A DNA stretch of 64,000 nt from Octopus sinensis (Eukaryota). The stretch lies in NCBI RefSeq assembly GCF_006345805.1, contig NC_043010.1:28954001-29018000 (forward strand), in the 5' to 3' direction. The stretch's first letter is position 1; each line of letters opens with the position of its first letter. Of the stretch, positions 56,311 through 62,160 are shown piece after piece. The translations under genes and the position numbers were made by a program. The notes beneath the pieces are model-generated. The model saw nothing but the letters and a program-made list of their open reading frames with translations. It did no database searches and had not been told where the DNA came from.

Positions 56311-56410
56311 TATCTATCTATCTATCTATCTATCTATCTATCTATCTATCTATCTATCTATCTATCTATCTATCTATCTATCTATCTATCTATCTATCTA
56401 TCTATCTATC
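56311..56410. repeat. (TATC)25 microsatellite, left flank of the Tx1 element
   Basis: Pure TATC run ending immediately before GACGGACGTG. Confidence 0.95.
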
Positions 56411-56609
56411 GACGGACGTGCTGTCACCTCGGCTCCGAAGGTAATCGTTTATTTTGACTATTTATAGCTCATATTTTGTGTACATTTTTGTATATAAGGT
56501 GTGTAAGGCACCCAACTTTCGTTTGAGTGCTTTTCCAAGGGAGGAATTCGCCCCTAGGGGCAGTTTCAACCCTATTTAATTTACGTATTTTTCTTCTCGA
56601 CATTAAAAA

Positions 56610-58583
56610 ATGTCGGTAAATTTTATTGTAGAACGCTGGTCGCGTTCCTTTATGGACCAGCATTTTCCTAGTCTGGAAACGCTAGGAGGAAAAAAGAACT
56701 TATACACGCACACACATTCGACAAAGACAAACCTGAATGACGTGGTAGTGAACGCTGCAACCACTTGCAGTAACAGCCCTGTCACCACCACCACCACCAC
56801 CACCACCACCACCACTAACAACAACAACAACGAGACTACTACTGCTACCACCACAACCTCCACCACCACCACCACCACCACCACCACTAACAACAACAAC
56901 AACGAGACTACTACTGCTACCACCACAACCTCCACCACCACCACCACCACCACCACCACCGCCACCACCACGACCAACATAAATGATAAAAATGAAACTC
57001 ACGCGAATACTATTAACAAAAACAACAACAACAAGAAGAACAACAATAAAAATGAACTATCTAATTGTGAAGATGTTAATATAAAAGAATCAACAACACC
57101 AGTAAATTTCGCTGACACTCTGCGTCAGAAAAAAGAAATAGTAAAATTTACGAATGAAGAGTTAATAGAAACGAGAGCACTCTTTACAACCCGAGGGCAA
57201 GATTTAGTGCTGCATACACCTCAACACATAAAGGAACAAATAGAAAATAAGACAATTATATATAAAATTATAAGAAAAAACAAAAAAACAAAATGAACAG
57301 ATTACAAAAACGGATATAGAAAAGTGTTTAAAAAACATAATGAAGAAAAAAGAATATATAAACTGGGGTCCCCAGTTTAACACAGTAGTGGTCCGCTTCC
57401 CTAACCAGGAAGTGGCAAAAGCTCACTCTACGGAGTCTTTGGAAAATGATGAAATCATCATGGTACCATACTGCAAAGGCCAGAGAGTGAGTAGAATTAC
57501 TATTAAAAATGTACCCCCCGAGATTCCTAATGGATAACAGGGGCAATCTGTTACTATTTGAAAACTATAAATATCTTAGAGACTGCCGTATACCTAAACG
57601 ACAATTGGGGTGGAAAAACAATAGTAGTGACCATCCAGATTGAGGGGGCCTCTATCGAGAACCTACCTGATAGGATCCACTTAGAAAATGGGCAAAGCCT
57701 ATATGTTGTAGCAGAAGGCAAAAAGCCTAGATGCTACAACTGTGGCAGCCCAGAACATTTAATTGCCAAGTGTGCTCTGGTACAGAAAAAACAAGAAAGA
57801 ACAAATCAGAAAACAAATAAAAAACCCTTGTTGCCAACACCAACACCAACACACTCAATTATGGAACAATGCCAAGAAAAACAACAAACCAGCAAACAAA
57901 CCCCAACAACATCACCAAGAAAAAAAACAGTACCAACACAATCACTGTTGACGTCGCAACCAATTCATCATACTGAACCAAAAGATAGACCAACACCAAC
58001 ACCGAGGACAACAATTAAAAAGACAGAAAACAGTGACGAGAAGACAAATTCTACCCCTAACACCACAACAACACAAACACCGCACAATGCATCAACAATT
58101 TCTACAAGTATACATATTAACGCAAATGCTTTGCCTTTACCCCCTTCTGATTCGTCGGACGACGAAAGTTCGACGGAACGGCAAATAGCCACAGGGGGTA
58201 AAAGGAAAAGATCAAAAAAGCCCACCAAACAAGGAAGTAAAGCAGGGAGGTATTTAACTCCGGACAACATCCCCCTAGACAATAAAAAAATTAATGAACC
58301 CGCAAAACCACACACGCAACTAACTGCAATAGACACAGACAATAAAAAATTAATGGATTATATTGCATCCAACACGGACATCTGTGAAGATGACTTTAAG
58401 ACAAACAATCATCCGCGCACCACACCACCGAAACACACAAGAATTGTACACATAACACAAACACAACACCATACACTGAAAACAATATTTCCAAATGCGG
58501 TAGGCGGGTTTCAACGATACCTCTCCAAAAAACTATACACACACCTCATCAAAGACACTACAAAAGAAGAAGAAGAAAAATGA
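56610..58583 (+). pseudogene. Disrupted ORF1 (gag-like): Thr/Asn-rich N-terminus, RRM-like region, single CCHC knuckle, Thr/Pro/Lys-rich C-terminus
   Basis: Three track ORFs (56610-57296, 57340-57537, 57558-58583) appear to be joined by frameshifts; CYNCGSPEHLIAKC is C-X2-C-X4-H-X4-C. Confidence 0.8.
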
Positions 58584-58671
58584 AACTTTCGAAATGAGTA
58601 AGTGACCTTCCCCCTTGCCTCTTGTCTCTTCCAATGTAGTGTGTGAAACACAATTTTCGTAAACGTCAATT

Positions 58672-61564
58672 ATGCTTAAATTAGGTTGTGTGAATGCGCG
58701 TGGCTTGGTGTCGGCTTGGAAGCAAGGTTACCTTCTAAACGACATCAAGTCACTGAACGTGGATATAGTAGCTATCAGTGAAACCAGACTCAGCAAGCCG
58801 CGGGCCCTCGCGTCCATGTTTGGCGATCAATTTGACATTTATTTTTCTCCCTGTCTGCCGAACATGGGTGGTGGAGGTACCGCGGTGCTTTTTCGAAAGA
58901 GTCTAAATGTAAAAGTAAGAACAATATTCTAGACCCGGAGGGTAGGCTGGTTGTCTTGGACGTGGATGGCAGAAATGGGTGTGCATTCCGTCTGATGGCA
59001 GTTTATGCACCGTCCTTAACGGGTCGAGCGGATTTCTTCAGACGTCTAGAGGTTTTCCTGGGTACGTCTAGACCTTTACTGTTAGTAGGGGATTGGAACG
59101 CTATCTTGGACACACATCTAGATTATGTGGGAATGGATAGGAATAGAAGGGGGTGTAAGTGCCTCAAAGACCTACTCAGACGTTTCCATTTGTCTGACAG
59201 GTTCCGACTCGACCATCCGAACGTGCCAACGTGGACTTGGACAAACCGCGTCGGATCGTCGAGATCTTATCTAGATAGAATTCTATGCAGGACAGCGGAT
59301 AGGGATAGTGTAGGATGTCCACAATTTAAAATAGTCAGCTACACAGATCACAAATTTGTGACGTGTACGCTCGACTTAGATAAGACACATAGACAGGGTC
59401 CCGGTTACTGGAAACTGAACACGTCGCTCTTAGCGCGACAGGTTTACAGGAACCGGATTAGCGAGTTAATTAAGAGGGCGCTGACGGGAACGGTCGTTAA
59501 CAACCGCTGGTGGTACGCCCTGAAAATGGCAATAAAATCGGAATAAATTAGGTTTAGCAAGGAATTAGCGATAGATCGAAATAGAGTAGAGGGAGACCTG
59601 GCTAAGAAACTAGAAGAGGCACTTACCACTGGCAGCGCAACCAACGTGCTGGCTGCGAGGATGGCCCTCGACCAACAGCTCAACGCCAAGCACGAAGGTT
59701 GCGTCGTCAGAGCTAAAATGTGTGCCTTAAGGAACGAAGGGATCGAAGCTGCGCGAGAGGCCCGGGTAGCGGAGGCGCAGCGTGGCAACAGAGCCACCAT
59801 TCGGTCTCTAATAGATCAACAGGGATGCAGTTTACTCGAACCCGAAAGGATGTGTGAGGCCTTTCAACAGCACTTTGCTCGACTGTTTGGTGCGAGTGGT
59901 GGGTCGGAACGCGGGATGGATTTCAATGCCTACTTGACCGACTTGCCGCGGCTCTCGGCAAGAGAAGCGGAGTGTTGTGAAAGTCCCATCACAGCCGCTG
60001 ACGTGCGGGATGCGATGGCGGGCTGCGCGAGGGATAAGTCGCCTGGATTGGATGGTTTACCCTACGAGCTGTATTGTCAAATGCCAGACTTGTTTGGCGA
60101 CCTCTTGGCATCAGTCTACTGCAACTGGCAACAAAACGAGAGAATCCCCGGTTTCGTGAGCCGAAGTGCAGTAACGTTGCTGAAGAAAGACCCAAACAAG
60201 GGGAATTTTATAGATAATTTCAGGCCCATCACTCTGCTCAACGCAGATTTGAAAATTTTGGCCAAAGTAATAGCTGAGAGGTTGGCGCTTGTCATTGGTA
60301 AACTGGTCGACAGGGCGTAAACATGCGCCGTGCTGGGCAGAACCATACATGACAACCTCCATCTGATGCGCTACATTGTGGACAGGGTAGTTAAGGATCC
60401 TGGCATGGGTGGGGCGCTGATAAATTTGGATCAGTCTAAAGCCTTCGATAGGGTTGACCATCGGTACTTGGCGGCCGTCCTCAGGGCGCTGGCTTCGGTC
60501 CCGTCTTCCGCGGTTGGATCGCTGCCTTGTATAGCGGCATCCGATCGGTGATTCGGGTGAACGGTCACCTGTCGAAACCATTTGACATCACGCGTTCGGT
60601 CCGTCAGGGGTGTCCCCTGTCGGCACTTCTGTATGTATTGACTCTCGAGCCGCTACTACGGAAGCTGGCGACACTGAGGGGCATCCCACGGGAACTGGGT
60701 TGCGGGACGAGCGTGTTGGCATATGCGGACGATGTCACCGTCATAGTGTCGAGCGACAAACACATGCAGATGATAGGCGAGACACTAAGAAAATACGAAA
60801 CGGTGACGGGAGCGAAGATTAACCCGGAAAAGTCAGTGGGTTTGCTACTCGGCACCTAGAGAAGCAAGCCCATGCCGTCCGACTGCGGCTCAATAGTGGG
60901 ACGCTGGACGGACGGACCGGTTAAATTGCTCGGGGTCTGGTTCAGTCCGGACCTCCAAATGGATAAGAACAGGGACGAGATCACGGGTAGAGTGGTCGCT
61001 CTCAGCCAAACATGGGCCGAGAGAAAGCTGTCTCTAAAAGGCCGGGCGGAGGTGGCGAACGCGTACATCGCATCCGTCATCGATTACCGCCTGACCGTCG
61101 TGCCTTGTCCCGACGCCAATATCACCAAACTGGAACGCATACTCTTCCTCTTCCTGTGGAAGGGTGGCGTTCCGATGGTGAGGAAGTCCATTTGCTGTCA
61201 ACATCCGTTGAATGGAGGACTGGGCATGCCGTGGTTGATGATGCGCAGGCATGCGCTGAGACTGCAACATCTCTGGAACTTCATCGACGACGGTGAACAG
61301 GTGTGGGCGCCGTTTGTGAAAACGGTTTTCGTTACGCTGATGGCTATGGCGAAAGAATGTGTGTGGTGGACGCGTTTGAAAGGATTGCAAACAAACACCT
61401 TCCTCTCTGGTCAGTCACTCGTCAACTTTTTCAAGTACCACTTGAAAAGGAGGATGAGAATAGAGAGGAAGGCTTTGTCGAACGAATGTTTTAATAAAAA
61501 GTGGGTAAAAGTGGCAAAAATGGTCAGTATGAAAGACGACACTATTTTAAGCATAAATCTGTAA
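58672..61564 (+). pseudogene. Disrupted ORF2: APE endonuclease and reverse transcriptase, with an in-frame C-terminal deletion
   Basis: MLKLGCVNARG, ISETR, AVYAP, GDWNA, SYLDRI, TDHK; RPITLLNADLKI, DQSKAFDRVDH, VRQGCPLS, AYADDV. About two 1-nt frameshifts (~58930, ~60490) and three in-frame stops (59546, 60320, 60859). Confidence 0.92.
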
Positions 61565-61844
61565 CCAAAAGAGACAACGAGAAGTAAGGCGACTTACTCA
61601 TGTGTTCTTTTTCGAACTGTCTTGGTCTTTTTTGTAGGTTTTTCTTTCCAAGGCTACACCTAAACAGTGAACCTTATATATATATATATATATTGCTTTT
61701 TTATACACCACACAACCCACAGATCCCTATTGATCAAACATTTTTCTTTTGCCCCACCCATCCCACCTCGAAAAGAAAAAATTCTACATTGCATTTCGTC
61801 CATTTTTATTCTGTGTTTAGCCCTGTGTGGCTACAATAAAAAGT

Positions 61845-62160
61845 TATCTATCTATCTATCTATCTATCTATCTATCTATCTATCTATCTATCTATCTATC
61901 TATCTATCTATCTATCTGTCTGTCTGTCTGTCTGTCTGTCTGTCTGTCTGTCTATCTATCTATCTATCTATATATCTGTCTGTCTGTCTGTCTGTCTGTC
62001 TGTCTGTCTATCTGTCTGTCTGTCTGTCTGTCTGTCTATCTATCTATCTGTCTGTCTGTCTGTCTGTCTATCTATCTATTTGTCTGTCTGTCTGTTTGTT
62101 GGCACAGACACACACACACAGACACACACACACACACACACACACACACACACACATTCA
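61845..62160. repeat. (TATC)18 then mixed (TGTC)/(TATC) and (CA)n, right flank of the Tx1 element
   Basis: Pure TATC at 61845-61916, then a compound array. Confidence 0.95.

Follow-up and report, generated by a model that had tools for sequence, protein, structure and literature searches.

Several long interspersed elements (LINEs) are embedded in microsatellites. In the Tx1 clade, Kibi occupies (TC)n and Koshi (TTC)n in teleost fish (Kojima and Fujiwara 2004, as cited in PMC4494074), and crocodilian families lie in (TTCC)n/(TTTC)n (Kojima 2015, PMC4494074). Waldo in (ACAY)n and Mino in (AC)n belong to the R1 clade (PMC4494074, PMC3812793), and Dong (R4) has inserted into (TAA)n in Bombyx, Anopheles and the snail Biomphalaria (PMC3812793). 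Microsatellite-embedded LINEs are so far known for few repeat units, and their specificity is usually credited to the endonuclease. Here we describe a 5,434-bp LINE with (TATC)n on both sides, located at 56411-61844 of a 64,000-nucleotide window of the Octopus sinensis genome (assembly GCF_006345805.1, contig NC_043010.1, positions 28,954,001 to 29,018,000; coordinates below are those of this window unless a locus is named). We propose, with a probability of about 0.6, that the clade of this element integrates into arrays that match its own 3' microsatellite tail, and that the repeat unit can change. Two things set the case apart: (TATC)n as the unit, and a change of unit between relatives of one clade while the habit of entering a matching array persists. 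The literature searched contained no TATC/GATA-specific LINE and no target analysis of cephalopod L1-Tx1 elements, which agrees with the original prediction, whose author, a model reading the sequence alone, was aware of no such specificity.

That prediction had the boundaries of the element exact to the base. Junction reading and Tandem Repeats Finder placed a (TATC)25 array (56311..56410, plus strand, 100% matches) directly before the LINE and 18 pure TATC units (61845..61916, plus strand) directly behind it, in identical strand and register. The 5' junction at 56410/56411 is ...tatctatc|gacggacgtgctg. At the 3' junction, 61844/61845, we read ...ctacaataaaaagt|tatctatc (the LINE finishing with ...gtgtggctacaataaaaagt at 61844), where no poly(A) is present and the sequence passes straight into TATC. 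The array continues over 61917..62156 on the plus strand, as mixed (TGTC)/(TATC) to 62099 and then as (CA)27 at 62103-62156. A 16-mer of TATC units had 84 matches in the window versus 0 in 100 shuffles. TATC-type arrays cover only ~1% of the window outside the element, with all long ones within 55.5-62.1 kb, so that a chance TATC match on the 5' side is improbable.

Like Kibi, Koshi and the crocodilian Tx1 families, the focal element is an APE-type LINE of the L1/Tx1 group that lacks poly(A) and sits in one orientation in one kind of microsatellite. Unlike theirs, its unit is an AT-rich tetranucleotide and not a pyrimidine/purine-strand repeat. The original prediction took both fish families as trinucleotide specialists; this is right for Koshi, whereas Kibi targets the dinucleotide (TC)n (PMC4494074). 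Dong resembles the octopod clade in its AT-rich trinucleotide target, which is equivalent to the (ATT)n of most focal relatives, and in that molluscs are among its hosts. It differs in being an R4 element with a single open reading frame (ORF) and a restriction-like endonuclease, whereas the focal LINE has two ORFs, encodes an APE of L1 type and is colinear with human L1 ORF2p.

Relatives were recovered from Argonauta hians and from metagenome contigs. A word-indexed protein search missed those at 59-69% identity, yielding a single close match, P0001 (68% identity, on a 3-kb contig without a 3' end), and a family at 43% identity; an exhaustive search with P0001 together with cluster look-ups found them. 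An exact-protein look-up of one window ORF gave no match, the 23-mer of the focal 3' end was absent from the JGI metagenome contigs, and a profile scan of these contigs returned no relative, though JGI contigs with relatives exist elsewhere. One of the latter, L007, ends with ...GGCCCTAGTGGCCAATAAATGAAATC followed by at least 23 units of (ATT). The Argonauta locus L008 is a head-to-tail stack of a 99-bp 3' fragment and three full-length copies: (ATT)12 separates the fragment from the first copy, (ATT)13 and (ATT)5 separate the copies from one another, and (ATT)4.7 lies between the last copy and unique DNA. Since these copies are 92.9-100% identical and the first full-length one has a divergent 5' third, the stack reflects successive insertions and not duplication. 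At L010, a 120-bp LINE fragment has a SINE (short interspersed element) tail, ATTATTATTGTTGTA, on one side and (ATT)21 on the other, beyond which follow three stacked SINEs and another LINE.

TATC-type arrays reappear at L009, where A. hians carries two copies of a third Argonauta family that share 65% of their amino acids (67-70% of nucleotides). Copy c2 (13231-18858) has TATC CCTC (CATC)4 at its 5' side and (TATC)14.5 at its 3' side. Copy c1 ends with ...TGTGGCTAATAAAGAAA and (TCTA)5, and its 5' end lies, as a probable position only, at ~4596, after (TATC)2(TGTC)5. Apart from the two 3' arrays of L009, the 65 kb of Argonauta DNA sampled holds no TATC run that reaches 4 units and includes 3 or more TATC. 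The family thus shows pure 3' arrays versus degenerate 5' arrays (TGTC, CATC), a pattern to be expected of a freshly synthesised 3' run behind an old target on the 5' side. The junction register also differs between copies (…GAAA|TCTA, …AACA|TATC, …AAGT|TATC), which argues against a fixed templated end. Both L009 copies have the same ~160 bp element downstream in opposite orientation (12808-13060 and 18917-19070), which on its own strand ends …AAGTAAATAC and then (TAGA)n, and both are preceded by an identical 22-nt motif, TTTTTCTTGTCTGTAAAACTC; LINE and downstream element are thus arranged tail to tail in both cases. Directly upstream of this LINE stack, L009 2379-4484 holds an unbroken, host-gene-like ORF of 701 amino acids.

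At their 3' ends the members of the clade share a conserved ~25-nt motif (…CCYTTGTGGCTAATAAAAGAA-like), after which a microsatellite stands in place of poly(A). We observed this anatomy in the focal copy and in about ten related copies. Among clade copies with readable junctions, 10/12 have on both sides the unit of their own tail, pure or degenerate (copy B and L010b are the two exceptions), a tally in which the copy of O. bimaculoides is counted by its 5' junction alone, its 3' end falling in an assembly gap. Separated by unit, 4/4 TATC-type copies with a readable 5' junction adjoin a TATC-type array, although such arrays cover ~0.2% of the Argonauta loci, and 6/7 ATT-type copies adjoin ATT runs. 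Kojima (2015) regarded a family as target-specific when >20% of its flanks carry one sequence type (PMC4494074). At the level of the lineage, the tally across the clade supports a habit of microsatellite homing well.

The unit does not follow relatedness. In a 1035-column ORF2 alignment, amino acid identity to the focal LINE was 70% for L001 (tail unit not readable), 69% for L007 (ATT), 59-61% for the Argonauta ATT families, 54-56% for the Argonauta TATC family, 49% for a further copy in the window (copy B, no tail repeat) and 42-43% for an ENA/JGI outgroup family with A-rich junctions in L002. That is, the nearest relative with a readable 3' end carries (ATT)n and not (TATC)n. Because the unit does not follow these identities, the TATC association would have been gained or lost more than once. 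Kibi, Koshi and the crocodilian group, in contrast, cluster by target, so that their unit follows phylogeny, whereas the octopod unit differs between close relatives, (ATT)n versus (TATC)n. The original prediction of an octopus lineage targeting (TATC/GATA)n is therefore borne out in one respect, the recurrence of the association in O. bimaculoides and in two Argonauta copies, and not in the other, a fixed TATC specificity, the relatives being mostly of the (ATT)n kind. The outgroup (L002-L004, 43% identity) was also considered as TATC evidence, but its A-rich junctions hold no microsatellite, and it was set aside as uninformative. Its members L002/L003 (ENA ERZ21867824, ctg88761c; a eukaryote in a metagenome assembly) form a perfect head-to-tail array of full-length elements with a period of ~6821 bp; the junctions (A13GGA5) lie beside an inverted repeat (ctcggtaagac…gtcttaccgag).

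Three more LINE copies of related families occur in the window, all on the minus strand. Copy D (32047-32996) is 5'-truncated, ends with ...GTGGTTAATAAAGAA and has an observed/expected (o/e) CpG ratio of 0.23. With ATTATTATTATCATTATTA, a SINE tail, before it and (ATT)8 after it, it lies inside a microsatellite, and both the copy and its junction are present in O. bimaculoides too. Around it, a 1.8 kb minus-strand chain of SINE-(ATT)n-SINE units extends over 31640-33430, in which its (ATT)n run links two SINEs. Copy B (~49260-52950), 5'-truncated, of L1 type and ending with ...GGTAAAATAAAGAAATA, has no microsatellite at its ends and is nested in another, unrelated LINE. The 5.2-kb minus-strand block that holds copy B and part of the unrelated LINE (49023-54254) is missing from O. 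bimaculoides, has CCAACAG at both bounds and apparently arrived in a single insertion. The third, copy C (28450-30387), is fragmentary and decayed.

The terminal motif links these LINEs to SINEs. Over ~50 nt, two window SINEs (62172-62316 and 38790-38942) match the 3' ends of copy B and of the focal LINE, and Argonauta SINEs end with …GGCCCTTGTGGCTAATAGAGAAAT, as the LINEs do. The shared 3'-terminal sequence of a stringent-type LINE-SINE partnership is thus in place, and the LINEs would presumably mobilise the SINEs. What is shared appears to be a sequence motif: a candidate 3' stem-loop, a small AGCC/GGCU hairpin, was no more stable than shuffles (z -0.4 to +0.9). Tails may also arise anew. 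Two stacked minus-strand SINEs at 38728-39350 are both absent from O. bimaculoides; the second (38808, minus strand) ends with GTAGTAAAGAAATA, then (TA)19(TG)8TAGATT(TA)8, whereas the empty site of O. bimaculoides, …CATGCTGG^ATGATCAC…, has no repeat. The composite (TA)n(TG)n tail thus arose together with the insertion, and the repeat-free empty allele shows that tails in this group can form at integration.

Tail-target pairing is the simplest account of the 3' motif, the repeat tails, the embedding and stacking, the pure 3' runs, the variable register and the changing unit. The transcript would carry a microsatellite at its 3' end, by read-through of the donor flank or by slippage of the reverse transcriptase, and the endonuclease would nick AT-rich simple sequence. 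Target-primed reverse transcription (TPRT) would then be most efficient where the nicked bottom strand, (GATA)n, pairs with the RNA tail, (UAUC)n. New copies would in this way enter existing arrays of the same unit, many of them tails of older LINEs or SINEs, leaving the old array at the 5' side and a fresh pure array at the 3' side. We infer the pairing step, the origin of the tail and its role, in place of the endonuclease, in setting the repeat unit from the anatomy described above. A related idea was put forward for RTE/Bov-B LINEs and SINEs, in which the microsatellite-like repeat at the 3' end is correlated with the nucleotides that open the target-site duplication (Nishiyama and Ohshima 2018, PMC6007223). 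There, too, a repeat at the RNA 3' end would help to choose or prime the site, and LINE-SINE partners share a 3' end. RTE copies, however, are dispersed and have ordinary target-site duplications, and long arrays of the same unit or stacking were not reported for them (PMC6007223).

A more tentative proposal, possible but in our view less than probable, is that the 3' microsatellite tail and not the endonuclease carries target choice, as a heritable and easily switched 'address label'. A copy landing in a new type of array would transcribe through it, inherit the repeat as its tail and home to that unit, which would explain (ATT)n versus (TATC)n among close relatives and their stacking on each other's tails. 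If the tail did set the address, retrotransposons would have a simple route for changing safe harbours. The head-to-tail stacks and the SINE-microsatellite-SINE chains, which make up much of octopod repeat DNA, would be explained as well. Two practical matters are touched as well: the seeding and interruption of tetranucleotide arrays in cephalopod genomes, and the tendency of short-read assemblies to break at such loci, as at the orthologous site in O. bimaculoides, where the assembly has a gap.

The specificity may instead be encoded in the endonuclease: the APE would nick the (TATC/GATA)n duplex, as proposed for Kibi, Koshi, Waldo and R1/TRAS, and the 3' array would be the remaining target. 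An endonuclease that reads the repeat predicts the same anatomy as a matching tail. Moreover, the literature sees the endonuclease as the main determinant of target choice in site-specific LINEs (PMC4494074, citing Takahashi and Fujiwara 2002), and Tx1 microsatellite families for (TC)n, (TTC)n, (TTCC)n and (TTTC)n are already known. We nevertheless consider this explanation rather unlikely, for the unit does not track ORF2 relatedness, a near relative having (ATT)n and a more distant Argonauta lineage TATC. LINEs of the clade and partner SINEs also occur at sites without a repeat and next to resident elements whose 3' end is bare, and the splitting of one old array would not predict the pure 3' versus degenerate 5' runs seen in Argonauta. 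Recombination or gene conversion between tailed, stacked copies, or expansion of a short 5' TATC seed, could likewise have produced the arrangement, given that stacked copies exist in Argonauta, that microsatellites expand and contract fast and that the 5' junction of O. bimaculoides has two TATC units only. Yet no trace of a second copy is seen in the window, the 5' array could have grown from 2 to 25 pure units but need not have done so, and the same anatomy is seen again at unrelated loci, so that such secondary rearrangement appears improbable. Least credible, and very improbable, is pure coincidence, in which a LINE with its own (TATC)n tail inserted without preference in a TATC-rich region. 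Another 283-bp TATC/TGTC array does lie 640 bp upstream, de novo tails are possible in this group and the related copy B lacks repeat flanks. But the 5' array stops exactly at the first base of the LINE, and the 4/4 TATC-type and 6/7 ATT-type copies adjoin their own unit despite a TATC coverage of ~1% in the window and ~0.2% in the Argonauta loci.

Several points weigh against integration into tail-matching arrays, beyond the anatomy it has in common with endonuclease recognition. The focal family itself is known from one or two copies (in the window and at the same O. bimaculoides site), too few for family-wide flank statistics, and the copy in O. bimaculoides, which may stem from the same insertion, would then not be independent. 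The L009 copies are incompletely independent as well, owing to their similar neighbours, the 22-nt motif and the 160-bp element. In two cases, copy B and L010b, one junction or both have no matching repeat. Neighbour-joining bootstraps were erratic after rooting, and the claim of unit switching has the pairwise identity matrix as its sole basis.

In O. bimaculoides, the orthologous locus (L005; GCA_001194135.2, CM046614.1) shares synteny with the window to the left and right of the LINE; at ~7% substitutions and ~1 indel per 100 bp, the window belongs to an Octopus species near to O. bimaculoides but distinct from it. In window orientation, the focal site of O. bimaculoides reads ...ccgctatttaa TATCTATA, and 312 bp of a LINE belonging to the focal family adjoin it immediately. 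Its 5' junction thus comprises only two TATC units (TATCTATA), and the copy is 5'-truncated, its first base being the equivalent of window position 61205. Past the LINE piece come an assembly gap of ~2.8 kb N (about 29.205-29.208 Mb of CM046614.1), (CA)16 and the same unique flank; the (CA)n part of the downstream array is common to both species. Over 105 codons the fragment shows two stops; its zf-RVT region, deleted from the window copy, is still present.

Two histories have roughly even odds: one insertion before the species split with a 5' deletion afterwards in O. bimaculoides, or two insertions that hit one array separately in the two species. The LINE copies differ at 16/112 sites. At non-CpG sites their divergence is 12.8%, whereas 8.5 kb of orthologous flanks differ at 5.9% (p = 0.012 in a binomial test, 112 bp compared); with the highest local rate instead, p = 0.09. 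An insertion dating from the split is expected to carry ~5.5 stops and ~9.2 frameshifts, versus 3 and 4 observed in the window copy (P = 0.21 and 0.05, respectively). CpG content does not discriminate between the histories. Divergence and lesion counts together lean to two insertions, and a single insertion also needs a random deletion that ends inside a 100-bp array, a further point towards two. Two hits on one array are, however, a priori rare, though less so given the stacking elsewhere.

From its lesion load, the age of the focal LINE would be of the order of half the divergence between the two species; the LINE may even have inserted before they split. The original description of a young element with few frameshifts and stops is therefore doubtful, the actual load being 4 frameshifts, 3 stops and a deletion of ~0.42-0.48 kb. 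Its remark that CpGs are retained was accurate, with CpG o/e at 0.92 in the whole element and 1.05 in ORF2 compared to 0.51 in the window. Yet the unique flank beside the repeat cluster (54254-55480), which shows ~6% mismatches to O. bimaculoides, has a CpG o/e of 1.16 at 35% GC and looks like an unmethylated CpG-island-like stretch, perhaps a promoter, which would make CpG retention nearby a poor clock. Copy B was rejected as an age calibrator, because block 49023-54254 was inserted whole and its lesions may be older than that insertion.

By its coding content the focal LINE is an APE and reverse transcriptase (RT) element of the L1 superfamily (L1/Tx1 group), in line with the APE-encoding LINE originally predicted. 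Pfam identified APE (PF03372) at 2.5e-15 and RT (PF00078) at 9e-30. With phmmer, focal ORF2 residues 6-868 matched human L1 ORF2p residues 12-888 in a single stretch (E = 2e-50; comparison structures 8uw3, 8sxt and 9k6g), whereas R2 proteins matched in RT alone, at 1e-20. The protein-search and cluster matches comprised unnamed proteins only, with no named Tx1 reference among them. In O. vulgaris, the recently active LINEs of the L1 superfamily are L1-Tx1 only, with 13 families, and targets are not mentioned (PMC13282606); this gives indirect support to the Tx1 clade, named in the original prediction, as a candidate placement.

The element is a decayed, essentially full-length copy. Its length is 5.43 kb versus ~5.98 kb in intact relatives, and its 5' untranslated region (UTR; 56411..56609, plus strand), which starts with GACGGACGTGCTGTCACCTCGGCTCC, is homologous to sequence located ~10-15 nt from the 5' termini of the intact copies in Argonauta (...GCGGACGTGTTTTCGTTCGCTCC), so that its original description as near-full-length holds. 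A conceptual ORF1 of ~659 amino acids (56610..58583, plus strand) has frameshifts at ~57294 and ~57535. It contains a CCHC zinc knuckle (CX2CX4HX4C), CYNCGSPEHLIAKC, at 57732-57773, scored as zf-CCHC at 21.5 bits against a cut-off of 20.8 (Pfam, joined central segment). Tx1-clade ORF1 proteins consist of RNA recognition motif (RRM) and/or CCHC zinc-knuckle modules and are not of the mammalian coiled-coil type (PMC5203782). The knuckle of the focal ORF1 is Tx1-like; Pfam gave no RRM match there, and a single-sequence AlphaFold model was unusable at a pLDDT of 33. An in-frame 72-bp (24-codon) tandem duplication at 56784-56959, with 2.4 copies at 99% identity, lies in the Thr/Asn-rich N-terminal part and is evidently recent.

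The conceptual ORF2 (963 amino acids, 58672..61564, plus strand) encodes APE at ~58729-59294 and the reverse transcriptase at ~60195-60940, and is interrupted by frameshifts at ~58930 and ~60491 and stops at 59544, 60318 and 60857. This brings the lesions of the LINE to 3 stops, 4 frameshifts and one deletion of ~0.45 kb. The junction of the deletion lies at 61318..61335 (plus strand), where ~0.42-0.48 kb including the C-terminal zf-RVT (CCHC) region was lost. It was seen as tblastn gaps against P0001 (residues 692-833) and P0364 (residues 872-1031), and DNA alignments with the O. bimaculoides copy and with L001 lose homology at the same junction. The relatives P0001, P0364 and P0215 keep the zf-RVT region (PF13966). 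The 3' UTR (61565..61844, plus strand) closes with the terminal motif ...TTTAGCCCTGTGTGGCTACAATAAAAAGT, which aligns with window copies B and D, the partner SINEs and the Argonauta and JGI relatives.

Human L1 has the same domain order, with homology across APE, RT and thumb (E = 2e-50). In its TPRT the nicked T-rich strand pairs with the poly(A) tail, the same logic as the tail-target pairing proposed here. In contrast to human L1, the focal tail is a microsatellite and not poly(A), and ORF1 carries a CCHC knuckle and not the coiled-coil/RRM/C-terminal domain arrangement. The octopod 3' motif is, furthermore, shared with SINEs, which suggests 'stringent' recognition.

The surroundings of the element hold further repeats. 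The left edge of the (TATC)25 array touches the 5' end of a minus-strand SINE (~55790-56310), on whose 3' side lies a TG-rich and (GACA/GATA)n array (55489-55771); both are also present in O. bimaculoides. There, an extra ~213 bp (L005 5480-5693) lies inside the upstream TATC/TGTC array, and its end resembles the head of the neighbouring minus-strand SINE, that is, another element end in that array. Downstream of the LINE, a 5'-truncated plus-strand SINE with the same 3' motif (…TAGCCCCTTGTGGGTAGTAAAGAAATA) occupies 62172..62316. Since it is missing from O. bimaculoides, it is evidently a later insertion, at a non-repeat site (TATC^TAAGACG). As a candidate long target-site duplication of the LINE, we compared the left flank (GAGTTA…GCTATTTAA) with the right flank (GAGTTAAGCTATCTAA), which matched no better than shuffles (P = 0.1-0.46).

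At 44082-45950 on the minus strand, a single-exon C2H2 zinc-finger ORF of 622 amino acids is 95% identical to the O. bimaculoides 'zinc finger protein 865-like'; an identical protein was absent from the protein collection searched, so that either the annotation of the source species would be missing this gene or the collection would be missing the species. Finally, a small-MITE-like (miniature inverted-repeat transposable element) palindrome of ~100 bp at 10440-10590 (…gttacccagggtt…aaccctgggtaac…), unrelated to the LINE, is followed by (TATC)6.

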